Source: Octopus sinensis (lineage: Eukaryota). Taken from it: a stretch of DNA of 64,000 bases. The position numbers and the translations under genes were made by a program. The notes under the pieces were generated by a model that did no database searches, was not told where the DNA came from, and saw nothing but the letters and a program-made list of their open reading frames with translations. The DNA lies in NCBI RefSeq assembly GCF_006345805.1, contig NC_043008.1:31744001-31808000 (forward strand), given 5' to 3'. This document shows positions 1,421-50,318 of the stretch, piece after piece. Each line of letters starts with the position of its first letter. Within the stretch, counting starts at the first letter, position 1.

Positions 1421-2680
1421 TGTCAGATGAATGTCTGATCCTTTGTGTTTTATCTCCATACTGAGGGATTAACGGGAAACACCTGACCTGCTAGGACCAT
1501 TATTGGTCATGGAAGAGTCACTCCATTGTTTTAGGTTTGACTTACTTCCTGACCACTGACCATACCTTATATAACTGCGAGTACCTTTCTCTCGCTCTCC
1601 TCAGTTTTGGACCGGCTAATGGAGAACACATATGTCTCGGATCTTTACCTTTTGACCGACAGATTAAAAAAAAAAATTTTAGTAACTAAACACTTTCAAA
1701 CTTCGTATACTGGTAGAATGTGTCATATAAAACATCCTTTACTTTTAGCGTTTTTTGAGAAAAATCTTATATTTAGGAAGTTATTTCACGTTAAAATTGT
1801 CCTGTTTCGGTAATTTCAACCAACCAATGACGTGTATTTAGCTGAATAAAATTACTGCTGTTGTTTGTCAACAAGAACTTCTAGCGGTGTATATTTCGTT
1901 TGTTACTGTTATTTATAACAACCTTAACTCTAAAACCTTAACCCTAACCCTAATCCTAAAATCCTAACCCTAACTCCCTAAAACCTTAAAGCTAAAACCA
2001 GTACAAACGCACAAACGATGCAATAAATAACAGTGACAAACGAAGAATACACCGCCGATAGTTGTTGTTGACAAACAACGGCAATAATTTTATTCAGCTG
2101 AATACACGTCATTGATTGGTTGAAATTACCGAAACAGGACAACTTTAATGTGAAATAACTTCCCAAATATAAGCTTTTCTCAAAAACGCTAAGAGTAAAA
2201 GATGTTTTATATGACACATTCTACCAGTATGCGAAGTTTGAAAGTGTTTAGTTACAAAAAATTATTTTCTAAATCTGTCGGTCTAAAGGTAAAGATCCTA
2301 TCTCTCTTCGTGTCAGCCGTTAACCGGGAGCATTAGCATCGAACGAAAGGACAACGTAATCCTTACCCTTTCTTCCTCTCTGTCAGCAGAACGTACTTGG
2401 CTTACACTCTACCAATTGCCAGCGAGCGACCAATACATTGTAATATTGTCAATTATTGTATCTGTCTAACTAACCACTGCCGGCAAATAAATCTGTGAAT
2501 ATTATTCTTTTCTCTTCGATGTTGTTATTACGTTGTTTCATCCTACTTTCGACTATTTGCATACAGCGACCCAACGCGCAACGAGAATTCCAATTTCTAC
2601 ATAGAGTAACTTTTCATCTGTACGATACGATTGGTACCTCCGTGAGATCCTTACAATCGTACATTACATATGGTGACCCT
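1421..2680 (+). mobile_element. LTR-like sequence (~580 bp net) interrupted by a foldback element and followed by a PBS-like TGGTGACCC
   Basis: Starts TGTCAG at 1421, has TATA-like cttatataac near 1567 and AATAAA near 2487, ends ATTACA at 2668, TGGTGACCC at 2671. Confidence 0.4.
1639..2298. mobile_element. Foldback/MITE with ~275-bp TIRs, a degenerate (CCCTAA)n core and an 8-bp TSD (Merlin- or hAT-like)
   Basis: TIRs GGATCTTTACCTTT... / ...AAAGGTAAAGATCC; flanks TATGTCTC (1631-1638) and TATCTCTC (2299-2306). Confidence 0.85.
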
Positions 2681-4170
2681 TCACATTCTACCACTACATT
2701 TGGTAACACCGACACGCACAATGTGTGTGTGTGTGTGTGTGTGTGTAAAAACTAACACTTCCTTTTTCTGAGCTGAGATTCGAAACCAAATCTAAGGATT
2801 CTCGCTCGTTTGATCCACCACTGACCAAACAGGCGCGAAAGACATTTCTTTGTCCTGTCAAAAAAATTATGGATGCTTTCCCTTCGACCTCAGCCGTTTC
2901 ATCAAAGGTTCAAGCGGACAGGAGGCAACCTACATAGGTAGGAATTTCTCCTGTGGTATCTCTGTCTCTCTCGCTGTCACAACCATTATAAATACAGAAA
3001 TTCGTCAAGGGACGAGACAGACAGACAGACAGAGAAATAGCCGGCGGCGAGACGGCCAGCAAGTAACTTCGCCATTTAAGCAGGCAACAGAGATCCAGAT
3101 ATTCAACATGAACGACAGTAGCAGTCGCAGAACATAAACAGACAACACCGAATGACCAACGCACACATAGACACAAAACATGTCCGGTTCTACTTCATCA
3201 TATCGACACAGCATTTATTCAGTTAATTTCTTCTTGACGAGCTCTTTGGTGTATACAACAAGTAAATGCAAGTGTCGTTTAAATAAATCATTTAAACTAC
3301 ACTCCGATGTTTTCTCATTGTTTACTTTGACATCGTCCACATGCTTATTTCATCTGCTACCTCAACATCTTTTATTACACCCTTCGTTATTCTACATAAA
3401 GTTATTTTCGACAATAATTGCTTAACCTAATTTCACTATTGTTGTTCATGTATGTGTTCAAAATTACTAAAATATACGCAGATTTACACATAGATATGTG
3501 ATCTTACAAGCTGCTTACATTTTCTAAAGGTTTTCAAGGAACAGTAGATTTAGTTTCCGCAAAAGTTGCGCATTTACAACATATTTGATTCATTCCATGC
3601 AACAAATGTAAATTATACGTTATTATTCACATTCATTGCAAAAGTTCCTGAAGAACTTTATTTCAGGTAAATATATGAAGTGGCACCAACACACCTAGGC
3701 CTTCTGAATTTTCTATCTGTAATTTCAAATTCTTTTTTTTTATTTTATTTTATTTATTTTTTTTTGTCACAGATTTGAAAACTTTAAAATTAAGAAGAAA
3801 TTTTTCGAATTTGGTATATTGATGTAATTTTTCACATTGACTCCGAATTTAGGATTCATTCATTTCCAGAAAAAAAAAATTAGAAAAATGTTACAAAAGT
3901 CCAAAGTTACATAATTTGTAGTCCAGTCAGAAAACAGGAATCGGAATCAAGTATTTTCTGCGTGATAGCTGTATGTCACAAAATGACAGACACAAATTAC
4001 AGGCACTAAATGATATCGCTCGTCAAAACTTGTGGTGGTGGTTGCGGTGGTAAAAGTGTCACAGTCGCACTAAGTATAACATTCCGGTTAAATTGAAAAC
4101 ACAGCAGACTACAGTTTTGCTTGTTACTATGGAAACAGACACCAGTGTGAGATTTACGATCATATATATA

Positions 4171-5220
4171 ACGAGGGTAGACTATAAAGTTCACAGGCTG
4201 ACTGTGAAGGAGTGATGCTAGAGCTGTGAAATCTTACATGCATTAATTTCAACCTTTCTTGTTAATAACTGCATTGTTTCTTTCAAGGTAAACTGACCTC
4301 TGACTGTTCAAAGAAGACTTCAGAATAAACTTGTAACGACTTCTCTAGAAAATGAACAAAACTTGGCCTCGTGGTGTTATCAAGTATGTGAGGGGAAAAG
4401 GGTTTAGCCCCCAAGGACGTTCATGCTGACATGGTTGCTACGTTAGGGGATGAAGCTCTATTTTTATCAACAGTGCTAACGGGAGCAGCTGAATTTAGGA
4501 GGGGAGGGAAGAGTCTCCAAGATGAACCAAGATTTGAGCGTCCTGTAACTGCCAGCATTGACGAAAACATTGAGCGTTTTCACGACATGGTGACAAATGA
4601 CAGGCGAGTGACTATAAACCAAATAGCCAATGATATTAGTATATCGTGTGAGAGAGTTGAGAATATTCTGTACAACGAACTTATTATGACGAACGTTTCT
4701 GCTCGGTGAGTGCCACACTTCACACCTGTTAAAACGTGAACCAGGTTGATCACATCACGGGAAAAATCTGACATTAACTGATACAGATCCAGCTGGTTCA
4801 CTTGAACATTTCCTAACCCACGATGAGTGTTGGACTCATCACTGAGCTAAAGACAAAGAAACAATCCATGCAGTAGCAACACCTCCTCTTCACTTTCTCC
4901 AAAGAAGGCCAAGGTCGCTTCATCTGCAGGGAACTTGATGTCTTCAGTTTTAGGGGATGAAAAAGGCATTGTGTTTATGGACGATCCTCAAAAAGGAAAC
5001 ACCATCAATGAAGAGTACTATGCCAACTTGTTGAGGTAGTCACGAAAGCTATCAGGACCGAACGCCCAGAAAAACTGACGAAAGACAATGTTCCAACACG
5101 TTCTTGGTTTTAATGGCTGCTGTGCGTGATTGTGGCTCTGATCTGGTTGATCACCCTACCTATTCTGACAAGGAGTACATGCATGTAATGTAAATAGGCT
5201 GAAGTTGAATATAAAAGATA
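4171..5220 (+). mobile_element. Degenerate mariner (DD34D-type) transposon
   Basis: Frameshifted transposase (EFRRG..SLQDEPR..RP, DRRVTINQIA, VSARWVPH); TIR-like start matches the copy at 33801. Confidence 0.85.
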
Positions 5221-5221
5221 A

Positions 5222-5594
5222 TCTATTATATAAAATCCGTTCTGTCTGTCTCTGAGTGTGTCTTCTAGGATCTCGGGCATCCTTCATCCAATTGCGCTCA
5301 AATTTGATATGTAGATACCGACGGTATTAGGGCGTGTATAAGTCTTGAAAAAGTTACAAAAATCGATTCCAGGTGAGAATGCGACCAATAAAGTGAATAA
5401 AATCGTTTTTCTTTGGAATAGAAAAAAGGTCTATCTTTATTTTATTTATTTTTTTTTTGTGTCTCAAATTTAGGTTAAATCGGTGTTTCTCAAAGAGGAG
5501 GCCTCAAGGGACGGTCGGAAAAGTTGTTTTGAGAAAATTTGATTTAAATGTTTGACAACTCAGCACCGTCCGTTGGACGGGAGCGTTTTGCTCG
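5222..5594 (+). mobile_element. Non-autonomous Helitron, family D
   Basis: A|TCTATTATATAAAA start; subterminal hairpin CCGTCC-GTT-GGACGG; CTCG|T end (a variant of CTAG). Confidence 0.6.
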
Positions 5595-6279
5595 TACTGT
5601 AATATAATGGAAAATATGAAATAGGATAATTAATAATGGAATAAGTGTAAATACAAATAAATGTATTGAATGAAATATATATATTGATGACGCATAGTCC
5701 ATAATGTATGTATGTATGAATGTATGTATATATGTGCATGTATGTATATGTATGTTTGTATGTATGTATGTGTGTGTATGCATATTTTTGTATGTATGTA
5801 TGTCATCATTCGGTTTTATTTCAATTTCTTACCAATAAAGAGCTGATTTCTAACCTAAATCCAAGGTTCCTTCATTGGAATTTCAAGAACACCAATAAGG
5901 TATTTTTGTTTGTATGTATGTATGTATGTATGTATGTATGTATGTATGTATGTATGTATGTATGTATGTATGTATGTATGTGTGTATGTATGTATGTGTG
6001 CGTATATGCATGCATGTACAAACGTACATACGAATGAATGATTTCTGTGAGGGGCAGAAGAAATGAAGAAATGAAAAGGCTAAGACTTTCTGGCCCGATA
6101 CGCTATGTTGTATGTTGATATCTCAACCTTCGGTTGGTGTGTGCTTTGGTACATATATGTGTTAGTGTGAATGTTCATGTTTCATAGAAAATAGTTGTTT
6201 TGCAACGTAGCAGAGAAGATTCCAAAAGTGAAGTGGAAAAACTTTCAAATTCTATTATTACTTCTTAATCACTTGTGAT

Positions 6280-6316
6280 GTAATTGTGTATATATATACA
6301 TATATATATATGCATG

Positions 6317-6371
<55 letters not shown>

Positions 6372-6381
6372 TGTGTGTATG

Positions 6382-6432
<51 letters not shown>

Positions 6433-6443
6433 ATATATATATG

Positions 6444-6474
<31 letters not shown>

Positions 6475-6580
6475 GTATATATATGTGTATATATATATAT
6501 ATATGTGTGTATATATATGTCTGTGTATATATATATATGTATACATATATATATGTATATATATATGTATATATATATTG

Positions 6581-6615
<35 letters not shown>

Positions 6616-6638
6616 GTATATATATATGTATATATATG

Positions 6639-6692
<54 letters not shown>

Positions 6693-6733
6693 TATTATAT
6701 GTATATATATATATGTATTATATATATATATAT

Positions 6734-6813
<80 letters not shown>

Positions 6814-6875
6814 ATATATATATATGTATACATATATATATATATATGTATGTATGTATATATATATATATAAGA
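6280..6875. repeat. ~600-bp compound (TA)n/(TG)n microsatellite
   Basis: Visible directly; source of the spurious YIYI ORFs. Confidence 0.98.
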
Positions 6876-7263
6876 AAATTTTATAACTTCGTTAAACCAA
6901 ATAGCAATTTCGTTAAACCGAAGAGCAAAAATAAAAATGGGACTGCAGCTGGAAGTGCTTAGGTGACATCGAGGCGAAAGGAGAAATAAATTGAAATAAA
7001 TTGAAAGGTATAATAAATAAGAACTCAAGACAACTTTATGTCATTCACAAATTATGAAAAAAAAAAACGAATATAAATATATGGTAAAATCGTATTACCC
7101 TTTTAGGTTCTGCCACCTTTTTACTCGTGCATATGTGTATATTTTACACTGTTTGATTTTATATCATTGGGTGCCCTATTATTTTAATATATATATATAT
7201 TTATATTCGACTTTTGATAATTTGGGAATGATATAAAGTTGTTTTGACCGATTAGAGTGCTTA

Positions 7264-7298
<35 letters not shown>

Positions 7299-7301
<3 letters not shown>

Positions 7302-7407
7302 CTGCTCGCTTAGCCAGCGGGGTGGCGTCATTCGAAGGCTAAAACAATGCGAACGCATTGTGACCAGCGATGTGTAACTACATCTGGTGGACTGGTCGGT
7401 GATGTGA
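7299..7407 (+). mobile_element. 3' tail fragment of SINE family S3 inside (TA)n
   Basis: Matches 10770-10881 (cctgctcgcttagccagcggggtggcgtc...gcattgtgaccagcgatgtg). Confidence 0.8.
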
Positions 7408-7433
7408 TATATATATATATATATATATATATA

Positions 7434-8001
7434 CTAGCTTTTAAGCCCCGTCTTACCTGGTTGGTTTGTATGATGTGGCTGTGAAGCCTGCTCTGAGTAA
7501 GAATTCGACTTGTTTTGGCACGCTTACATTAAAAAACGATTTTAGAATGACTTTTTCTGTCAAAACGCTATAAATAACTGACCCCAAAAAAAATCAACAT
7601 TCAACCAAATCAAAAAATAAACCTAAATACTAAACGAACAAAGATGAACCATCCCACTTCCATTGCGTGCGCACACGCATACACATACGCACACACACAC
7701 ACACAAACACACATACGCATTCACATACCCCCGCTTTTACATACAAACACAGAGTTGTAATTTTTTGCGCAATTCTACCCAGCCGGTTGACCGTGAATCC
7801 CAAGACAAGAAAGAATCGCCCATGTCAAATTTATATATATATATATATATATATAATCATTCATATCTCTCACGCGCACACACACACATGCGCACACACA
7901 CATACACACATACACACACGTCCATTTCATATATCTTCTTTCAATTTCTGCTCTCTGCAAATAAAATTTTTTACGGATACAACTGCTTACAAAAATAGGG
8001 A
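7434..8001 (-). mobile_element. Non-autonomous Helitron-like element with internal (CA)n
   Basis: Minus strand reads A|TCCCTATTTTTGTAAG ... CTAG|T; weak subterminal hairpin. Confidence 0.5.
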
Positions 8002-11254: not shown

Positions 11255-11767
11255 TCTATATATATAAAACTGTAGTTGTGTGAGTGTCTGTCCCCTTCGA
11301 TTTAGATTCCTAACTACTCCCATATTTTGCGGTGCAGTTTAACCAAATTCGGGTATCTTATAGTCGTGATTCATATCGAGCCCGTCTGAGTATTAGCGCG
11401 CGTCTACGATGAGTCTACGATTTTAAAAATAATTTAACATAATTTTTTATTCCATTTTAAAGCATAATTTTTCGTGTATCGATGGCGGCGGAGTTGGCGT
11501 CCATGGTCACACCTGCACCTGTTTGCTTCTCCCCCTTCTTCCCTCCCTCGTGAAGCTGTGGGGAAGGGAATGTAAGGAAATCAACGTCGTAACGCGGTGT
11601 CAAGGAGACCAGCGTTCTTTTAGAACAACGACTTCATGGCTTGAAGACACCAAAACAGAAATGGCTAAGAAAGCTCGAATTGGCATCTATAAGGGAAGTA
11701 ACTCTCTAAAAATGCTTATATAGTTATTTCCCTTACAAACCCGAGCAACGCCGGGCGATACTGCTAG
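11255..11767 (+). mobile_element. Non-autonomous Helitron, family A (513 bp)
   Basis: A|TCTATATATATAAAACTG ... CCCG-AGCAACGC-CGGG hairpin ... CTGCTAG|T; no TSD. Confidence 0.9.
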
Positions 11768-22303: not shown

Positions 22304-25275
22304 AAATTTCACATAGCTCCATCTACCAAATTCCAATCACAAAGTATTGGTGAAACTATGGTTATAATAAAAGACATTTATTTGTTTAAAAAGCAGATCT
22401 GTCCTTAGAAAAACCAATGAAGTTTGCAATTGTGGTATATTCTCACACTTGCTTTCTCTTTTTTTCAGTCAGGTATAATTGGTTTTGATGAAAAACTGCA
22501 GTTCACTTTGATGTCTTCAGACTATGATCGTTTTCTATCCATCTTGGCTGCTCAGAAACCCCAGTGGACACCTGGTAAGTAAATCCATCACACTCTTTTT
22601 CTTAGTATATGTGTGTGTGTGTGTGAGAATGTGTCTATGTAAATTGTGATACAGCTATTGTTCACAACAGAACATATGCAACCTGTGGAAAGGTGTGCCA
22701 TTCAGTTGGAGGATTAAAAAGATATGTCAAAAGACTTCATTCTGTGGCACTTGTTCCTTCTGCCAGCCAGAACAACTGTGCATTATGCAATAAAATGTGC
22801 AAATCTTTGGCAAGACTCCAAATCCTTGTTGAGTGTCCATGTAAAAAGGGTAAGGACTGGCTTACTTGAAATGTCTTAACTGAGGAAGATGTTGCGTAAG
22901 AGCTGAAACGTGTGTATTAAATGCATTCAAAATATTACTATTTGGTTTAAATATATTATGTATGTATGGCTGTTGCCAGCCTCCCTAGGCACCTGTGCCA
23001 GTGGCACGTAAAAAGCACCCACTACACTCATGGAGTGGTTGGCATTAGGAAGGGCATCCAGCTGTAGAAACACTGCCAGATCAGACTGGAGCCTGGTGCA
23101 GCCCCCTGGCTTCCCAGAGCCAGTCAAATCATCCAACCCATGCTAGCATGGAAAACGGACGTTAAACGATGATGATGATGATGATGATATATGTGTATAT
23201 ATAAATATGTGTGTATATATATATATACATTTGTGTGTGTTGGTGTATATACACAAATGTATATATGTATGTACTTTTAAAATCTTAATACATTTTTCCA
23301 TATATTATATATAACATCTCTCATACTACCATCTGCTTCATATTTGTAAGCATTCTTACACACTCCATGTCTTCTTTACTTTGCTTTTTCTTTTTTAACT
23401 CTTAGTGATGGTTTTGAATTTACTTGTATCTCTTTGAGCTCTTGTGACTAATAAACAAAAGATCATCACCTCCTCCTCCTCCCCTTCCTCTGTTTTCTTT
23501 ACCTTGAAAATTTTTAGTGGTATCTAGTTACGTGCCTTTACAAGTTGATTTTGTCTTTCATCCTTTTAAGATAAATTAAATGAATACCAGTGAAATACTG
23601 GGGTTAATATAATCGATTGGTCCCACCTGAATATCAGACAGTCAATCAAGATGCTGTGCAACCAAATCACCTTTTTGCAAGAAATGGAAAAGAACTTAAG
23701 AAAGTTACTAACTTCAAGTACCTTGATACTTGGATGGAAAGTAATGAAAAGGACTTTGCTGTACAAAAGGTACTTGCTTGGAGTATCTGTCACAAACTTT
23801 GACTTTCAACAAAAAGCTTGAAATTTACAAATATAGCTGCTACATAGGAATGTTAAGAATGGTTCTGAATACTAAATGGTGAGCTCATTTAACCAATGAG
23901 CAGCTTTATCAAGATCTACCCAAAGTGATTGAGCAGATTCAGCAGAGAAGAATGAGACTTGCTGGTCATTGCATCAGGTACCCAGAAGAACCTGTGTGTC
24001 AACTGGTCCTATTGCAGTTAGTTGAACTAAGTATGTCAAACCTTGTGACATACTTAGATTGTTGAAAAAATCGATAATACGGCCCCTGGAAGGGACCTTT
24101 ATATCTACCTCATTTAACTAATTTTTTAATACCCAAGGGAAATAACCCATAGCACCTGCACAGTATTTTTTTTTTAAACCTTCAAAGGAAATAGCCCATT
24201 TCATTATTTATGTTCGATTACTTTGAATATTGATTTTTTTGTGTGTCCAATTTCTAATTTTTGCAGACAATATCACTATTATACTTTATTTGACACATGA
24301 GTAGAACTCATGTCAGGAAACCGCGTGACATACTTAGATTGTTGAAAAATATCGATGATAGGGCCCCTCCAATGGATCCTTCTATCTACTACATATTACT
24401 AATATTTTATTTAAATAACCCAAGGAAAATAACCCATACCACCTGTAGTTTTTAGCGAAGTGATCAATATTTGATTCTCACGATCAGCCGGCCTAATACT
24501 GCGTTTCACTAGTCACAGTTTTGAACTGCTAAACATTATTATTGCACATCCTTAATTTGAATCTTAAACATTAAAGACTTCATTCATACATTTCTATACA
24601 TACATACTTTTTTGAATGCCCATTACTTCGATAATTCTGCGTTTTTATAGTTACACTTTTTCCATGACAGTAGATAAATTTTTTATTCCACAATGTATTC
24701 ACAGTGGCTTCATGTAGGTATAGCGTGGATTCGATCCTCTATTGCCAAATTTTACTTAACACCCCAACAGTGCTTTTCTCACGGTAAAACAATAGTTTTT
24801 CTGTGAATGACAGCAGTTATACATTTCCCAGATGCCTTCGCTAAGCAGAATAATATCTTTGCCACATGACCCTTCTAACCTTTTCTAGACCACTAGAGGC
24901 TAGAATGGAGATAATAGACCTCCAACGAAATCATTTGTTCTCAACAATATATCTATCCTTCTGGATGCTTTTCGATAGTTATAAAGAACTCCGTAAGCTA
25001 AAGGCAGTAACTGAGAGAGACCCTCAGCGAGTGTGAATGTTATCATTGCACTTTCTTTAAACACTTCATTCGTATATTTATATACATACAATCTCTTCCT
25101 CCTCCAGCTGACAGTTTTTTGTACTTTTTCGTGATGGAAAATACACCTTTTGTGACTGTTATAACGAAATTGCCTTCTTATATCAGAGTTATAAGACAAT
25201 ATCAGTACAACATTTTTACCCCCGGGAATTGCCAGGTACACCAGCTAGTATATATACATAAATATATATACATAA

Positions 25276-26384: not shown

Positions 26385-29300
26385 ATTACATATTGTTGAA
26401 ATTTACAGAAAAACAAAAGATGAAGAGAGGTGTATAAACAGCAAACAGGTGTATTAGTTTAATGCTCGGGAAGGTGAAAGTCATTTATGTTTCTAGCCTA
26501 TGCGCTTCAACAGAAAGGAACACGAGGAAATAAACAGAGATAGAATAAAAAAACTTTTGGTGCTAGCAGTCAATCATGGTGGCTGTTTCGCCATGATAGA
26601 TTGCTAGCCACTACACATTCTTTATTTTCTCTCCTTGTTTCTTTCTGTTCCTTTCTGTGGAAGAGCGTAGGCTCGAAACGTTAAAGACTTTTTCACTTCC
26701 TGAACGTTATACTAATACATCTGTTTGTTGTCTACACCACCTGTCTTCGCCTTTTGTTTTTTTTGTGAATTCTCCCTATATATATATATACAGTGTGTAA
26801 GATATTTGAGGACAGATTTATGTTTATAAAAAACAGCTATATGATAACAGATAATAATTTTATTTATCAAAAAATTCTATGAAGATAAAAGCCACCTTCA
26901 GTTTCAACAACGGCTTCTATTTGAGATCTAAATCATCTACATGTTCAAAGCAGGTGGCCCTGGTTCTTTTTGGACATTATTCTGTCTATGGCAGCTTTCA
27001 AAGAATCTTTGGTGTTATGGGTGTGTTCATTGACCTCTCTCTCAACAATGCTCCACATGTAATAGGTCAATGGATTGAGATCTGGGGAATTAGCAGACCA
27101 AATGTTAGGGGTTATGTGATCAGGAAAATTTTCAGCTATCCATTCCTGTGTTACTAGAGCCATGTGTGATAGTGCAAAGACTTACTGAAACATGTATGAC
27201 CTTCCATTGCATACACTGTCTATCCAGGGCTTAACAATTATTTCTAGGAGCTAAATGTAGGTGGTAGGGTTAACTCTAAGGCCTTGTGGAAAGATGTAAG
27301 GAGGCATCACATGTTCTTCATTGCTGACATCCCCTAAAACCATGATAGTTGCTGGAAATTTTGTATGCATAACACTTAAAACTTCAGAAGAGTCTGTACA
27401 TAACCATCTATCATTTCTTCTGTTATCTTTTTGATCTTGGTTGAAGTTTTTCTTGTTTGAGAAAAACCAAATCAAATCTTCTACTGGATTTTTCAGTTTG
27501 TTTAAGAACCTTTTAGATCTGAAGTAATGATTTTCTTTAGCTTTTTCTGACAAATTGACCTTTCCTCATCATATAAGACTTATATCTGATGTCTTTGTGG
27601 ACAACATTTCTGACTGTTCCTTCTGACACATGGATATCTTTCGCAATTGATCTCATAGACTTTCTGGGATTGTAATCAATGCTCTGTTGAACATTTAGGT
27701 GTTCTGATGATTTCAGAGCATTTAGAAGGTTTTTTATGCTTTGATACTGGTGATACGTTTCCATCTTCAGTCTCTAGCTCCTTACAACCACCATCTTGTA
27801 TGGCTATGCTGTATTAAAAACACAAAATGTATTAGAGGGAGAGGGAAAGGCAATATATACCAATATAGGAAACAATGGATTTTAACATTCACTGATGTTG
27901 TGATATTTTTGTATTCCATATTTTATATTTCACAGTCCCATAACTGAAACAAGTAAAAGTGTAACAGAATAGAGAGCAATAGATTGATAGAATCAGTTGT
28001 ATGATTGACAAAATGTTATTGTATTTCCCTGTGTTCAGGTCACTATTTTTTTTTAAGTAATATCTCATGAAAATTTACATGTTGAAGACTGTCCATGACA
28101 GAACTCACATCTCCTATAAACATGACAGGTGTGCTTATGACATTAACAGTATATATATTCCTGTACTTTACCAGGTATTGACTTTTTCCAAGGAATCCCT
28201 TATGAGGAACAGTATCGTGCTGAAACTAGAATTTACATCAAGTCTGTCTGGGACATTTTGCCTCACATTTTCTCAAAACGGTTCTTTAACCTGTGTACAT
28301 CAATGTGGTTCGACAAAAACAACTATTTAAAAACGAGTGTCACAACATTCCAGGTGAGTTGTTTTATTTAAATCCCTTCTCTCCTTGGGATAGAGTTTGT
28401 TTTTATTGAAGCTTTGCCTCTCAGTTGAAGAAGTTGAGAGTAGAAGTTCAGCCTTTTATTAATTTTTATTATCTCTCTCTATATAAACGGCAGTTTGTCT
28501 GTGCGTGTTTCTGTGTGTCTGTTTTCTTGTACCCTCACCCTGACCACGGCTTTCAACCGATTCTGATGAAACTTGACACACACATAGCCCAATGTCATAA
28601 TTCAAAACTAACGCAGCGAAAATTTTGAAAAGTTCCCCCAGTTCTGAAAAAAATCGATAAATTCGACATGGGGTCGAGAATCAGAAACACAAACCGCAAA
28701 CTGTCTAGGGGACGCAACTCCACTTTTTTAACTAAAAAAAAATTTACCATCATTTTTTTCCATCTTTTTGCTATTTTTTGGCTATAACTCTCTAAAAATG
28801 TTTTATAGTTATTTCCCTTACAAACCTGAGCAACGCCGGGCGATACTGCTAGTAGATGATAAGTGTGGTGAAATTGCTGAGGCTAAATGGACACAAGCTC
28901 TCAGTATGTCTCTGAAGGCTTGTGGCAAGAACCAGGAGAAAACTCTTGTCTTTGGTGTGTCAAGGCATTTATTAATTTTTTTTATTATCATTGTTGATTT
29001 AATTTCTTTTAGAATCCTTTCAGTTTGATACACATGGGCCACTTTTATTGAAAAGTTTTCACGGATTTAGTTATACATGCCACTTATGAAAATGCTCATC
29101 CTCATTTTATAGCACTAATTATAATTACTATTATTATCTATTAATTTATCTATGTACCCACACAGTATTGTTTATTCCATGCTGCATGTTACAGCAAATT
29201 TAAGAAACACCATGTTCAATGCTCCTGCATTTTAATGCTCATTATAATTATAATTACAATTATTGTTAGTCATTTATTTATCTATTTTGTCACAAAGTTT

Positions 29301-44086: not shown

Positions 44087-44474
44087 TGTGTGTGTGTGTG
44101 GTGTGTGTGTGTGTGTGCGTGCGAGAGAGAGCGTGTGTGTGTGTGTGCGTCCATGCGTGCGTGTGTATTTGTGGCGAGATAGATGGAGGGAAAGAGATGT
44201 GTATACACAAACACAAATGTATATACATATCTTATCTTCTACTTGCTTCAATCATTAGACTACGGCCATCCTGGGGCACCACCTTAAAAATAATTTTTTT
44301 TACAATTTTTTTACCTCGGTACTTATATTTTCTTAAATTCTGGTACTTTTCTATCGTTTTTTTTTTTTTGCCGAACCGCTAATTTACGGGGATGTAACCA
44401 CATCAGAACCGGTTTTCAAGCGGTAGTGGGGTATAAACACAGCTATAATGACACATTCACACATATATCTCTTA

Positions 44475-46597
44475 CTAGCAGTATCGCCCGGCGTTGCTCG
44501 GGTTTGTAAGGGAAATAACTATATAAGCATTTTTAGAGAGTTATAGCCAAAAAATAGCAAAAAATGCATTAAAAATGGAAAAAATATGATGGTAAATTTT
44601 TTTTTAAATCGTTGACTCATCGTAGACATTTTTAGAGAGTTACTTCCCTTATATAATAGCGAAAAAAAGCATTAAAATGGAAAAAAAACGATGGTAAATT
44701 TTTTTTTAAATCGTAGACTCATGTAGACGCTTTCTTAGCCATTTCTGTTTTGGTGTCTTCAAGCCATGAAGTCGTTGTTCTAAAAGAACGCTGGTCTCCT
44801 TGACAACGCATTACGACGTTGATTTCCTTACACTCCCTTCCCGACAGGTGCAGGTGTGAGCGTGGACGCCAACTCCGCCGCCATCGACACACGAAAAATT
44901 ATGCATTAAAATGGAATAAAAAATGATGTTAAATTATTTTTAAAATCGTAGACTCATCGTAGACGCGCGCTAATATTCAGACGGGCTCGATATGAATCAC
45001 GACTATAAGCTACCCGAATTTGGTTAAACTGCACCGCAAAATGTGGGAGTAGTTAGGAATCTAAATCGAAGGGGACAGACACTCACACAACTACAGTTTT
45101 ATATATATAGACATACATAGCGCAGTAGTGGTGAGATGTGACAGCAAAGAAAAGCATACATTCAGTCATTGCATGCAATTAGACTCGGAAAGTTCGTGAG
45201 GAACCCATTGACCCAATTTGCTGACTTTTCCGATAGCACACAGGTCTCAATGAATGGTTGAATGACCAAATCCAAGCTTCTCTGCTAGTTCCTCAACAGT
45301 TACGATGAGATTTTGTTCCACCAGGGTTTTCAGGATGTCCTTGTCGAGTTCTACAGATCTTTCAGGATGAGACTCGTCTTCTAGGCTGTAGTTTATGGCT
45401 CGGAATTTCTGGAACCACCATTGACACTGCCTTACGCTTATTGTCCAATCCCCATATACTGCATTAATATTTCTTGTACTTTCCGTTGCGTTGTTGTCTT
45501 TATTGAACTCATAAAGCAAAATATGCCAAATATGCTCCTTTGTTACTTCCAATATAGATTTGAAAAAAATAGCTGTTAAAATCGAAATGCACTCTTCAAA
45601 ACTTGCACTATGAATAAGGACAAGATAAAATTACTACCTGCTTTTATAGCAATTTAATATAAGTAGTTTATCCCATTCCCCTCTGACTTTTAGTTCAAGC
45701 TGTTGAAAAAACCGCATTATTATATATATATACATACATACGTACATACATATACACACACACTCTCTCTCACACACATGCACACATTTATATTCTGTTA
45801 TTCTTTTATATGTTTCAGCCTTGAGGTTGTGGCCATGCTGGATCATGTGTGTGTGTGTGTGTGTGTCTATCTGTCTGTCTGTCTGTATGTATATATGTAT
45901 ATGTATGTGTGTGAACAATAATATTTTCAACAGATGTGTTGCAAATGTATCTGATTGTTCTCAAGCTTCAATACTGTGTGTGTGTGTGTATGTGTGTGTG
46001 TGTGTATGTATGTATGTATATGTATGTATGTATATCTATGTGTGTATGTATGTATGTGTGTGTGTATGTATGTATGTGTGTATGTATGTGTGTGTGTGTA
46101 TGTATGTATGTATGTATGTATGTATGTATGTATGTATGTATGAGTGTATGTTTACTTTATTACTAACACAAGCCACTACGGTTATTTAATGTAAAGTCTT
46201 TTTCAAATCACTATCTCTGGCTATTTACTCTCTTCCAAGAACATTTTCACTCACACTTATGTGTTAGCTTCCCATACATTTTACTCATGTATCTATCAGC
46301 GTGATAGAGAGAAACAAATATTACATCTAGTTTCACTTTATTCGTTGCCCACTGTGTGTGTGCGTTTGCGTGTGCTGTAAACCAGACTAAGAAAAGCATT
46401 TGACACACACACCAGAATGTGAGTTTTCTGTAAATTTTGCTTAATTGGAGTTTAAATTTTAAAAACTGGACCTGGCATGACGCGATGCCTTGTACTCTTA
46501 AAAATGCTAGGTAAATTGTAATTGAAGAAATCCTATATTGTAGATTTGTATAACTCCCAAAGGGAGGCAGATAAAATCTGCCTTTTATAATAAGAGA
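44475..46597 (-). mobile_element. Composite non-autonomous Helitron, inner copy (2123 bp): family-B 5' end, cargo, complete family-A Helitron (44475-45111)
   Basis: Minus strand reads A|TCTCTTATTATAAAAGGCAG ... hairpin ... CTAG|T. Confidence 0.85.
45180..45720 (-). mobile_element. Mariner 5' fragment carried as Helitron cargo (shorter copy at 47440-47740, +)
   Basis: MEVTKEHIWHILLYEFNK...WFQKFR....SLED....R.VE.D...L...VEQN...TVEELA, GKVSKLGQWVPHEL. Confidence 0.9.
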
Positions 46598-48645
46598 TTA
46601 TAAAAGGCAGATTTTATCTGCCTCCCTTTGGGAGTTATAGAAATCTACAATATAGGATTTCTTCAATTACAATTTACCTAGCATTTTTAAGAGTACAATG
46701 CATCGCGTCATGCCAGGTCCAGTTTTTAAAATTTAAACTCCAATTAAGCAAAATTTACAGAAAACTCACATTCTGGTGTGTGTGTCAAATGCTTTTCTTA
46801 GTCTGGTTTACAGCACACGCAAACGCACACACACAGTGTGCAACGAATAAAATTAAAGTAAATAGCGACAGAGTGATTTGAGGAAGACTAAACTGAAAGT
46901 ATTCTGTCTATGACGCTGATAGATACATGAGTAAAATGTATGGGAAGCTAAGAGCTAAGAGTGAGTGAAAATGTTCTTGGAAGAGAGTAAATAGCGAGAG
47001 AGAGAGAGTGATTTGAGGAAGACTTTACATTAAATAACCGTAGTGGCTTGTGTTAGTAATAAAGTAAACATACACTCATACATACATACATACATACATA
47101 CATACATACACACACATACACACACATATACACACACACACATACATACATACACACATACATACATACATACATACATATACATACATACATACATATA
47201 CATACATACATACACACACACACACATACACACACACACAGTATTGAAGCTTGAGAACAATCAGATACATTTGCAACACATCTGTTGAAAATATTATTGT
47301 TCACACACATACATATACATATATACATACAGACAGACAGATAGACACACACACACACACACACACACACATGATCCAGCATGGCCACAACCTCAAGGCT
47401 GAAACATATAAAAGAATAACAGAATATAAATGTGTGCAAAGTACAAGAAATATTAATGCAGTATATGGGGATTGGACAATAAGCGTAACGCAGTGTCAAT
47501 GGTGGTTCCAGAAATCCCGAGCCATAAACTACAGCCTAGAAGACGAGCCACATCCTGAAAGATCTGTAGAACTCGACAAGGACATCCTGAAAACCCTGGT
47601 GGAACAAAATCTCATCGTAACTGTTGAGGAACTAGCAGAGAAGCTTGGATTTGGTCATTCAACCATTCATTGAGACCTGTGTGCTATCGGAAAAGTCAGC
47701 AAATTGGGTCAATGGGTTCCTCACGAACTTTCCGAGTCTAATTGCATGCAGAGACTGAATGTATGCTTTTCTTTGCTGTCACATCTCACCACTACTGCGC
47801 TATGTATATCTATATATATAAAACTGTAGTTGTGTGAGTGTCTGTCCCCTTCGATTTAGATTCCTAACTACTCCCACATTTTGCGGTGCAGTTTAACCAA
47901 ATTCGGGTAGCTTATAGTCGTGATTCATATCGAGCCCGTCTGAATATTAGCGCGCGTCTACGATGAGTCTACGATTTTAAAAATAATTTAACATCATTTT
48001 TTATTCCATTTTAATGCATAATTTTTCGTGTGTCGATGGCGGCGGAGTTGGCGTCCACGCTCACACCTGCACCTGTGGGGAAGGGAGTGTAAGGAAATCA
48101 ACGTCGTAATGCGTTGTCAAGGAGACCAGTGTTCTTTTAGAACAACGACTTCATGGCTTGAAGACACCAAAACAGAAATGGCTAAGAAAGCGTCTACATG
48201 AGTCTACGATTTAAAAAAAAATTTACCACCGTTTTTTTTCCATTTTAATGCATTTTTTCCCTATTATATAACGAAGTAACTCTCTAAAAATGTCTACGAT
48301 GAGTCAACGATTTAAAAAAAAATTTACCATCATATTTTTTCCATTTTTAATGCATTTTTTTGCTATTTTTTGGCTATAACTCTCTAAAAATGCTTATATA
48401 GTTATTTCCCTTACAAACCCGAGCAACGCCGGGCGATACTGCTAGTATATATATATATATATATATACACATACGACAAGCTTCTTCAGTTTCCGTCTAC
48501 CAAATCCGCTCACGAGGCTATAAGCAGAAGACACTTGCCCAAGGTGGCACGCTGTGAGACTGAACCCGAAATTATGTGGTTGGGAAGCAAGGTTCTTACA
48601 ACACAGTCAGTGATGCCTGCACCTACCTACCTACCTACCTACCTA

Positions 48646-48679: not shown

Positions 48680-49520
48680 GTTGGCAATTAAGTTCCCGCC
48701 GTTTTTTTAAATTTTGGTATTTATTGCGTTTTTAATCTATTTTATTTTTGAATCATTTTGGAATCTTTTTTTTTCTAGTTAATTTTAGTTAATTTTTGTG
48801 TTTTTTTTTTCAGATTAAAATGAAATGTCAAGTTAAGAAAAACGAGCATTTTCGAAACCTCCTTGTTTTTGCTATTAATCAAGGTTCTGAGGCCACAAAA
48901 GCTGCTCGCGACATTTACACTGTGTATGGAGAGTGTGCCATAGTTGAAAGAACCGCTTGTGATAGGAATACCAAGTTCAAAAATAGAAATTTTGATCTCA
49001 AAGACGCACCTCGTTCTGGCCGTCCAGTTGAGTTCGATGAAGAGCGACTAAACCAACTTTTGCACGAAAATTCTCGTCAAACGACAAGGGAACTGGCAGA
49101 GGAAATGGAATGCTCCTACACTGCTATAGAGAAGCATCTTCACTCGATGCGAAAGGTTCAGAAGTATAGAGCATGGCCTCCGCGTGCTGTAAGTGACAAC
49201 AACAAAAATCAACGAGCCACACTCTCCGCTGGTTTGCTTGCTCGTCACCGCTCAACTCATGGACACAAGCAACGATTTCTTTGCTGAATCATTACTGGCG
49301 ACGAAAAATGGTGCCTGTACACCAATATAAAGCAGCGTAAGGAAAGGCTTAGCCCCAGTAAACAAGCGACACTGCGCGTGAAACAAGATCTTCATCCGCG
49401 TAAAACGATGTTGTGCGTATGGTGGGACTGGGAAGGGATTATCCATTACGAATTGCTTGAATGGAACCAAACGGTCAACGTGGAACTCTATGTTCAACAG
49501 ATGGAACGACTCAACACTGA
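48676..49520 (+). mobile_element. Mariner transposon, 3'-truncated pseudogene
   Basis: TIR-like ttggttggcaattaagttccc; DAPRSGRP, IITGDEKW, LHPRKTMLCVWWDWEGIIHYELL. Confidence 0.92.
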
Positions 49521-50318
49521 CCGGCTGAACGAAACGCCGTCTCTGAATGAAAAAGCACAGAAGGACAACTATGGTAACTCACCAACGAAGCAGTTGCCTC
49601 GTCCCACCACTCCCACGTTCTCACTAGCTCATGTCTCTTATCTACAACATCACTCTATCACTATCTTTGGTTTCCTTCTACTATGACGAGAACATCTACT
49701 CACTTATACAAGAAATTAACTCTCTTAACCTCGCATGCTTTCTCACTTATATTATACACGTCCGCTGTCGTTGTATGGCTATACATAAAGTAACAGTAAA
49801 TAAAGAATTTGAAGCCAACCATTGTTCTTCTTTCACGTTTGCAACATCACACCCGTTACACATGGATAACCACTCAAAACGAATAACTGCACCTACCGTT
49901 ACAAATGATAACCTCCGACTCCTAACATTTACTGTTATTTATATATGCGTGTGTCTTTGCATCTCTTTGATCCACCGCACCGCTTGGTAACCGGTTGCGG
50001 TTTGTTTACATCCTCATAATCCTGTGGTTCGGCAAAAGAGATCAATAGAATAAGTACCAAACTCTAAAAGTACTAAGGTCAATTTGTTTAACAAAAACTC
50101 TTCAAAGCAGTGCTTCAGCATCGTCCCAGTCCAATGACTGAAAGAGACAAAAGATTAAAGATAATCTGTGTGCATGTACATATTAACTATGAAGCGACAG
50201 AGGTGACCTAAATTTCTCGGTTTCCGCGTCAAATTACTTGTCAGGTTTTATAGTTTGTCAAGGACTTTGAAATGGAATTTTAGGCCATTGACCTACATAT
50301 TTCGTTTAACATATATAT

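Follow-up and report, generated by a model that had tools for sequence, protein, structure and literature searches.

How a palindrome of about 4 kb can arise by transposition, rather than by replication, is the question raised by a stretch of 64,000 nucleotides (nt) of the Octopus sinensis genome (contig NC_043008.1, positions 31,744,001 to 31,808,000), hereafter called the window. The palindrome lies at window positions 44468-48445 and is formed of two Helitrons arranged head-to-head. It was described in an initial annotation, made from the letters of the window, as a Helitron inserted in inverted orientation between nt 7 and 8 of a sister copy. The searches reported here covered the 2.72-Gb assembly, in which the window is C12:31744001-31808000; other loci are named likewise. 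The locus and its counterparts elsewhere are, with good confidence, best explained as a whole by two sequential insertions, the second of which used a hot spot at nt 7/8 of the resident copy, putatively through a nick made by the Helitron transposase RepHel.

One Helitron inside another

By sequence inspection, the outer Helitron begins directly after host A 44467 (left flank ...cacacatatA) with a 5' stub of seven nucleotides, TCTCTTA (44468-44474). From 44475 onward the sequence reads CTAGCAGTATCGCCCGGCG..., starting with CTAGCAG, the 3' terminus of the inner copy on the minus strand. It runs up to ...CCTTTTATAATAAGAGA (in its shorter form ...ATAATAAGAGA) at 46597, the 5' terminus of the same copy. 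The outer copy resumes at 46598 with TTATAAAAGG, or TTATAAAAGGCAG... in the longer reading, and finishes at 48445 in ...GGGCGATACTGCTAG (CTGCTAG), followed by host T and (TA)n. The layout given in the initial annotation was thereby recovered base for base. The near-palindrome totals 3,978 bp with a 5-nt centre. A repeat search found arms at 46325-46591 and 46597-46863 that are 97% complementary and are separated by AAGAG (46592-46596), the sole unpaired centre noted earlier, as well as a second pair of arms at 44649-45482 and 47438-48271 (834 nt, 99%). Such a layout is far beyond chance.

The two copies were aligned pairwise, the inner one as the reverse complement of 44475-46597 (2,123 nt) and the outer one as 44468-44474 joined to 46598-48445 (1,855 nt). 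The alignment holds 1,770 matches and 51 mismatches (97.2%). The roughly 300 bp first noticed in the inner copy only correspond to a block of 297 nt (inner nt 819-1115, window 45483-45779), accompanied by a few smaller indels. Nucleotides 1-7 and nt 8 onward of the outer copy, contiguous in other copies, are apart here; the inner copy is complete, and insertion between A and T is respected at the split. Since the stub and the remainder from nt 8 onward stand on opposite sides of a complete copy, the left copy inserted into the right one. The displaced 7-mer, the completeness of the inner copy and the flanking bases all agree with the nested inverted insertion proposed at the outset. The structure points to a sequential process in which the 1,855-bp copy lacking the block would have inserted first and the 2,123-bp copy bearing it later.

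The host sequence supplies a control. The joined flanks make up a single short interspersed nuclear element (SINE), and its paralogues (window 17416-17023, loci L012 and L013) align across the junction. At the site these paralogues have a (CA)n(TA)n tract and lack TCTCTTA, which means that the 7-mer is not derived from the host. The reading of the unit as splitting a SINE at its (TA)n is sustained by the continuity of the joined flanks with the paralogous SINE tract, and the possibility that an empty SINE already contains TCTCTTA, raised in the initial annotation, was checked on these paralogues, where it is absent.

A Helitron of the studied family also interrupts another member of this SINE family, again at the internal (TA)n (locus L006, C5:21451089-21454351), which makes the SINE microsatellite a place where Helitrons land repeatedly.

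Family identity

The first 263 nt of the outer copy gave more than 1,788 candidate matches in the genome, and 40 of those scored are 99% identical. Dispersed copies in plus orientation start with TCTCTTATTATAAAAGG, as expected from the initial annotation, and are preceded by A and by unrelated DNA upstream. The exact family 5' end occurs at 2,393 places. Among 100 sampled, the preceding base is A in 96 and the base at -2 is T in 80, the commonest flank being TATA. The 3' end ...GGCGATACTGCTAG occurs at 22,549 places and the next base is T in 100 of 100 sampled. With so many copies, this 3' end must be common to several families. In the same type of sample (100 flanks), 28% of the 3' flanks are (TA)n and the remainder carry the motif T N5 A-T-A-A-A at +7 to +11. 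Outside (TA)n, these five positions are A-T-A-A-A in 64-76% of cases and G or C is nearly absent. The target of the family is more specific than merely AT-rich.

A short GC hairpin, CCCGAGCAACGCCGGG, precedes the end of CTAG by 12 nt, its energy by itself not being distinctive (z -0.8), and a stronger 8-bp hairpin is located at nt 15-33 of the family 5' end. A direct reading of the termini, TCTCTTATTAT... and ...GATACTGCTAG, reveals that they are not complementary, so that there are no terminal inverted repeats (TIRs). The family thus displays the features of Helitron1 elements, i.e. a 5' terminus in TC, a 3' terminus in CTRR, insertion between A and T without target-site duplication, a 3' hairpin, no TIRs and a RepHel-encoding partner with shared termini. 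Assignment to Helentron or Helitron2 was rejected; these insert between T and T and possess short terminal or subterminal inverted repeats, and here the flanks are A and T and the termini are not inverted. The insertion rule first put forward (A/TC...CTAG/T, the slash marking the boundary, without duplication of the target) is borne out by the flank counts given above and by the empty SINE paralogues.

The Helitron_like_N domain has at least 150 matches in the genome. One of the encoding loci, L075 (C1:82.84 Mb), starts A/TCTCTTATTATAAAAGGCAG, and its nt 1-245 are 88.6% identical to the family. Its three pieces of open reading frame (ORF) specify Helitron_like_N (5.1e-58) and PIF1 (6.9e-65), and the element ends about 6.4 kb downstream in ...CCCCGAGCAATTCTGCTAG/T (CTGCTAG/T). 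This copy is probably decayed because its coding region is split over three ORFs. Another candidate, L074 (C12599:164000-173999), whose ORF 2362-7899 is an uninterrupted RepHel frame of 1,846 codons, was rejected as the RepHel of the family: it has no termini in common with it and belongs to a different Helitron lineage. The arms of the palindrome are non-autonomous members of one canonical Helitron family.

A sister family is also present. One of its copies, of about 380 bp, lies at window 28472-28852 (+) with the 5' end TCTCTCTCTATATAAACGGCAG, the same 3' end and A and T flanks. The shared 3' end, followed by TATATAAT, is found again at window 11752-11767 (+), and this short family is present in L039, L041 and L047 too.

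Origin of the two arms

Junctions lacking and bearing the block were counted in the genome by separate patterns. There are 261 places with the breakpoint of the outer copy (...GTGTGCA/AAGTACAAG...) and 280 with the block-bearing junction of the inner copy. Further inner-specific states are common to a minority of copies, and the 40 dispersed copies fit the 5' 263 nt of the outer copy better (99%) than the inner arm does (98%). By these counts the arms derive from two pre-existing subfamilies of about 260-280 copies each.

When the 51 arm differences were polarised against a comparison set selected with the outer copy, 30 came out as 'inner-derived', 8 as 'outer-derived' and 13 as polymorphic. 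Dating of the arms from these figures was abandoned, most of the 'inner-derived' states being subfamily markers.

Recurrence in the genome

Dimer loci were examined as stretches of ±1.5 kb plus small extensions. A genome pattern search gave 10 loci with an exact match to the centre junction CCTTTTATAATAAGAGATTATAAAAGG and a further 2 with a single mismatch. Each of these loci has a left copy that reaches nt 1 and a right copy that begins at nt 8. The other junction, TCTCTTA/CTAGCAG..., has 27 exact matches with different upstream host DNA every time; about ten are dimers and six or more are solitary copies with TAAGAGA as their 3' flank, consistent with the target motif of the family. Its 208 matches with one mismatch were rejected as decayed dimers and are mostly chance or target-preference flanks. 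Dimers can be counted reliably only by the centre junction. Altogether, inverted insertion at nt 7/8 was found at 12 loci with an intact centre and 2 with a rearranged centre.

Arm lengths vary from about 1.0 to 2.45 kb across the dimer loci and, within 10-11 of the 12, the arms are alike over only the first 250-400 nt, the dimer of the window having the longest homologous arms. Collinearity over both arms was not seen between any two of the 12 loci. Given the different host flanks and this lack of a common pair of arms, the dimers are independent events, neither segmental duplications nor copies of a transposed dimer. The initial annotation had suggested that recurrence of the junctions at other loci would reveal targeted self-insertion, and the recurrence at 12 loci, with differing host flanks and arm combinations, supports that suggestion. 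Its further proposal that the dimer is mobile as a unit was not upheld, no two loci having both arms in common.

Specificity for site and end

The first 27 nt of the resident copy offer four AT sites, at nt 7/8, 10/11, 21/22 and 26/27, among which inverted insertions are distributed 10:0:0:0. In inverted orientation, nt 7/8 is a family-wide hot spot that has been independently reused. In addition, 25 loci carry two complete 5' ends head-to-head, 0-15 nt apart and mostly separated by TA, TATA or TATATA. Head-to-head pairs (25 complete and 12 nested, among about 2,630 5' ends) can be compared with tail-to-tail pairs, defined by 3' ends within 30 nt of each other, of which there are 13 loci among about 26,500 3' ends. 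About 2.8% of the family 5' ends are therefore in inverted pairs, versus about 0.1% of the 3' ends. The (TA)n flanks are alike at the two ends (23% of 5' and 28% of 3'). Inverted insertions are thus drawn to resident 5' ends, where they fall at positions -6 to 0 and +7. The attack on the AT-rich 5' end imagined in the initial annotation is in line with the use of one AT site out of four and with the excess of 5' over 3' ends.

Direct-orientation junctions number 213 and read CTAG/TCTTATT..., CTAG/TCTCTTATT... or CTAG/(TA)n/TCTCTTA. The site nt 7/8 was absent among the first 100 of these 213 junctions, which represent either tandem arrays or insertion events at the boundary of a 5' end. Most head-to-tail junctions read CTAG/TCTTATTAT, the downstream copy being without its first TC (e.g. 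C1:59508876-59508919). At L011 (C14:63816218-63816704), the first 112 nt of the element are present three times in tandem, with TC microhomology at the joints (...GCA/TCTCTTA...).

Putative mechanism of palindrome formation

In the proposed mechanism, RepHel would engage a resident 5' end and nick its bottom strand at an internal AT, 5'-TTATAA/TAAGAGA-3'. The context of this site, 5'-...GGCAGATAAAATCTGCC-TTTTATAA/TAAGAGA-3', would place the nick 7-8 nt 3' of the 8-bp hairpin, an arrangement resembling the 3' end of the element. The nick would then be the target for integration of another copy, and use of the bottom strand would produce the inverted orientation; from that orientation it follows that the resident 5' end received the incoming strand on its bottom strand. 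Later, the centre of the palindrome may invert or be deleted via recombination or template switching between the arms.

A biochemical precedent exists. The purified Helraiser transposase cuts single-stranded DNA at the boundary between flank and TC on the top strand of its 5' end and also cuts the bottom strand of that end at an internal AT in vitro (Grabundzija et al. 2016; PMC4778049). The Helraiser substrate starts with TCCTATATAATAAAAGAG (PMC4778049, supplement) and the studied family with the sequence given above. Nucleotides 7-16 of the Helraiser left terminal sequence (LTS), ATAATAAAAG, are identical to those of the family, ATTATAAAAG, at 9 of 10 positions, and the two have A7-T8-N-A10-T11-A-A-A-A-G16 in common. 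This stretch from A7 to G16 may be a conserved 5'-end core holding the AT used in nested insertion. It is conceivable, and put forward tentatively, that resident 5' ends act as homing sites where RepHel, once bound, would cut the bottom strand in vivo between nt 8 and 7 and insert another copy. If so, the dimer loci would be the first genomic footprint of a 5'-end bottom-strand cleavage seen only in vitro, with Helraiser. Each event would split the resident 5' end, probably immobilising the resident, and would create kilobase-scale palindromes whose centres flip or are deleted. Transcribed palindromes of this kind would fold into long double-stranded RNA, a consequence envisaged, along with cruciforms, in the initial annotation. 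A cephalopod genome would have in this process an inherent source of RNA-editing substrates or silencing triggers, or a means by which the element limits itself.

Alternative explanations

The nested insertion could be real and yet involve no special recognition of 5' ends, the bottom strand at nt 7/8 merely matching the generic target preference, i.e. A/T followed by N5 ATA[AT]A in AT-rich DNA. About 26,500 insertions confronted with about 2,600 sites would then yield a dozen hits. In the 3' flanks, position +1 is indeed T and positions +7 to +11 are A-T-A-A-A. Among the four AT sites, only the bottom strand at 7/8 reads T-AAGAG-ATA[AT]A, given the usual TATA or TTTA host flank; such host flanks are found at 9 of the 12 nested loci, and the single copies with a TAAGAGA 3' flank, at least six in number, have no outer element. 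The frequency of the events does not follow from this preference. A motif model predicts at most 0.85 hits at 7/8, against 9 motif-matching insertions observed and 12-14 in total (Poisson P about 3e-7), and a position weight matrix (PWM) model predicts about 0.1, a value that is a lower bound on the expectation as (TA)n phase dominates it. Likewise, the proportions of 5' and 3' ends in inverted pairs differ despite similar (TA)n flanks. Generic preference can account for the choice of the site, not for the tenfold-or-greater excess or for the asymmetry between 5' and 3' ends, and as the full explanation it is rather unlikely. 

Other readings dispense with nested insertion. Foldback or chimeric long reads, due to a missed adapter or a template switch, are known in PacBio plus Hi-C assembly data and could in principle mimic such a palindrome. 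An origin of this type is very improbable here in view of the 51 substitutions, the 297-bp block and the other indels between the arms, each block state being shared with about 260-280 other copies. Moreover, a foldback would not yield the displaced TCTCTTA beside the outer CTAG, and the same architecture recurs with different arms at 12 or more loci. The 261 and 280 places and the 12 similar loci also bear out the initial view that the locus is not an assembly foldback. A local inverted duplication of a single Helitron, by template switch or from a hairpin-capped break, followed by divergence of the arms, would suit the very short 5-nt centre, which is like that of template-switch palindromes, and the centre inversions at sister loci that show the arms to interact. 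It has nonetheless little credibility: the arm differences, when tested, were found to be shared with dispersed copies and are thus subfamily-diagnostic and pre-existing, the arms at most other loci are alike over only 250-400 nt, and the 7-mer outside the left arm is left unexplained. As the arms belong to different subfamilies, both the foldback and the local duplication are excluded. Finally, a single foldback-type element (kilobase-long TIRs, CTAGCAG...CTGCTAG, with a TA target duplication) or a Helitron dimer might move as a unit, as the TA on both sides of CTAG...CTAG, the two outward-facing terminators and the recurrence of the structure in the genome might suggest. The same 'ends' are found about 22,500 times as ordinary 3' ends of single Helitrons followed by T, none of the pairs among the 12 loci has both arms in common and arm lengths vary; this possibility is extremely improbable.

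Sequential insertion at a preferred nick site has weaknesses of its own. The enrichment relies on background densities from one 60-kb window, so that the expected values of about 0.85 (motif) and about 0.1 (PWM) are rough. As none but the bottom strand of nt 7/8 matches the generic 3'-flank motif T N5 ATA[AT]A, ordinary preference could explain the site. The position of the Helraiser bottom-strand cut is given only in a figure. In L075, the autonomous relative, the reading frame is broken and the region of the 3' hairpin is shortened. Private substitutions number 9 in the inner copy versus 4-5 in the outer one, relative to a comparison set biased to outer-like copies. The order of insertion is read from the structure, and the locus is known from the assembly sequence.

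Fate of the palindromes

The position of the displaced 7-mer is known at 12 dimers. It stands beside the CTAG of the complete copy at 8 of them (on C12, C3 and C4, two on C18, C2:186 Mb, C15 and C9018) and reads CTAG/TAAGAGA beyond the copy starting at nt 8 at the remaining 4, where the central AAGAG has therefore been inverted (Table 1). At one of these (C10:79211381-79215000), nt 12-351 of one arm are missing next to the flipped centre. At C19:14.63 Mb (L051, 14626883 region), nt 615 of the inverted arm is joined to nt 1373 of the direct arm. From their sequence, both rearrangements look like deletions of a palindrome centre. The inversion of the centre suggests flip-flop recombination or template switching between the arms, with mis-orientation of reads in the assembly consensus as a caveat. 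These cases hint that the palindromes are unstable. The instability anticipated in the initial annotation is accordingly supported in part, by 4 inverted centres out of 12 and by deletions at 2 loci, the same consensus artefact tempering it. By analogy with Helraiser, which needs its 5' terminal sequence, the outer copy, whose 5' end is split after 7 nt, is probably immobile; the inner copy retains both ends.

A run of N, possibly an assembly gap, was observed to begin about 20 nt inside a Helitron 3' end at L033/L085 (C2:48948400-48952287), and this locus was left unclassified.

Annotated features and neighbouring elements

The features of the palindrome and of its host SINE are collected in Table 1, together with the loci with inverted centres. 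The cargo of the Helitron copies comprises a mariner HTH_48 fragment, a 102-bp tandem repeat and microsatellites. Directly right of the SINE lies a decayed mariner (48680-49700, +) with the terminal sequence TTGGTTGGCAATTAAGTTCCCGCC and the ORF start MKCQVKKNEHFRNLLVFAINQGSEATKAARDIYTVYG; this element is distinct from the mariner fragment within the Helitron arms.

Table 1. Features of the palindromic locus (window coordinates) and dimer loci with an inverted centre
Feature	Position	Strand	Evidence or remark
Left part of interrupted SINE	44236-44467	-	Ends in host A 44467 at the edge of (CA)n(TA)n; joined flanks align with paralogues
Outer Helitron nt 1-7, TCTCTTA, cut off from the rest by the inner insertion	44468-44474	+	Adjoins CTAG of the inner copy
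Inner Helitron, complete, 2,123 bp, block-bearing subfamily; 5' TCTCTTATT... at 46597, 3' ...CTGCTAG at 44475	44475-46597	-	
3' subterminal hairpin of inner copy, CCCGAGCAACGCCGGG	44487-44502	-	DNA fold: 6-bp stem, -4.5 kcal/mol, z -0.8; conserved in all sampled copies
Mariner (Mos1-type) transposase N-terminal fragment in inner copy	45247-45552	-	Pfam HTH_48, E 4.4e-20
297-bp block, inner copy only	45483-45779	-	Pairwise alignment; junction counts
5' hairpin of inner copy, element nt 15-33, AGGCAGAT-TTT-ATCTGCCT	46565-46583	-	DNA fold: 8-bp stem, -7.6 kcal/mol, z -2.8
Asymmetric centre AAGAG, sole unpaired bases of the palindrome	46592-46596		Repeat search
Outer Helitron nt 8-1855, TTATAAAAGG...CTGCTAG, block-less subfamily; 5' terminal sequence split after nt 7	46598-48445	+	
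5' hairpin of outer copy; on the bottom strand, 7-8 nt upstream of the nt 8/7 insertion point	46605-46623	+	DNA fold
Shorter version of mariner fragment in outer copy	about 47440-47673	+	ORF list
3' subterminal hairpin of outer copy	48418-48433	+	Sequence and DNA fold
Host T, then (TA)n and head part of SINE	48446-48625	-	SINE paralogue alignment
Inverted-centre loci	C27:11.219 Mb (L069/L055); C25:26.331 Mb (L072/L052); C2:165.95 Mb (L061 + L088/L089); C10:79.21 Mb (L045 + L081)		

Significance and comparison with known systems

Integration is the least understood step of the rolling-circle transposition of eukaryotic Helitrons, and the family constitutes a natural data set for it. The reuse of a single position and orientation 12-14 times points to a sequence- or structure-directed choice of target by RepHel and links the genomic pattern to the unexplained bottom-strand cut of Helraiser at an internal AT in vitro. 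The dimers illustrate a transpositional route to long palindromes, as opposed to a replicative one, and the sister loci capture the later fate of such palindromes, i.e. inversion or deletion of the centre. Annotation is affected as well, as dimers will be mis-called as long-TIR or foldback elements and the 7-nt stub of the outer copy will be missed. Hairpins of kilobase length would also be candidate substrates for ADAR or small-RNA pathways in cephalopods.

In the literature on head-to-head, inverted or self-inserted Helitrons, general self-insertion was found; a site-specific, palindrome-forming insertion at the 5' end was not. A repeat survey of Octopus vulgaris lists Helitrons and does not list the nested inverted structure (PMC13282606).

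The closest system is Helibat/Helraiser of vespertilionid bats. It shares with the octopus family the 5'-TC and CTAG-3' ends, insertion between A and T without target-site duplication, a 3' subterminal hairpin and an autonomous relative encoding RepHel (HUH Rep and Pif1-like helicase). Both include many non-autonomous copies with shared ends and variable interiors bearing gene fragments, both prefer AT-rich targets, most strongly on the 3' side, and LTS nt 7-16 are nearly identical. The studied family differs by its mollusc host, its 8-bp 5' hairpin at nt 15-33, its 3'-flank motif T N5 ATAAA and the recurrent inverted self-insertion at nt 7/8, which was found undescribed for Helibat in the literature searched.

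The HUH nucleases of IS200/IS605 and IS91, as is generally known, act on single-stranded DNA and cleave at a short fixed distance from a hairpin (PMC5876387). The octopus Helitrons may be likened to them in that the target resembles the element end and is not duplicated. Unlike these insertion sequences, the family is eukaryotic, its transposase carries a fused helicase and it is not known to use guide-sequence base pairing; the likeness is inferred.

Head-to-tail Helitron arrays are well known (PMC5876387). The approximately 213 CTAG/TC(TC)TTATT... junctions of the family and its tandem 112-bp 5' repeats are like such arrays or joined-end circles, and fit rolling-circle products or insertion at the 5' boundary. 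The structure in the window is, in contrast, head-to-head and its 5' terminal sequence is interrupted, an arrangement that read-through or concatemers cannot give.

Long inverted repeats and palindromes are fragile or recombinogenic sites. The dimer resembles them by its 5-nt spacer, its long near-identical arms and the centre inversions and deletions at sister loci, and differs from fragile palindromes in general by its transpositional origin.

In Fusarium, self-insertion of FoHeli elements gives rise to nested or composite Helitrons with multiple 5' termini, to which the tandem 5' repeats of L011 can be compared; nesting in opposite orientation was only hypothesised there, to explain a reversed ORF orientation (PMC5148889; PMC13342296). 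Adjacent Helitrons are found in maize (PMC2267711). These cases have in common with the octopus locus that a Helitron is inserted into or beside the 5' end of another. They are sporadic, mostly in direct orientation, and concern Helitron2-like or plant elements, whereas in Octopus sinensis one nucleotide position and one orientation were reused 12-14 times, with palindromes of up to 4 kb as the outcome.

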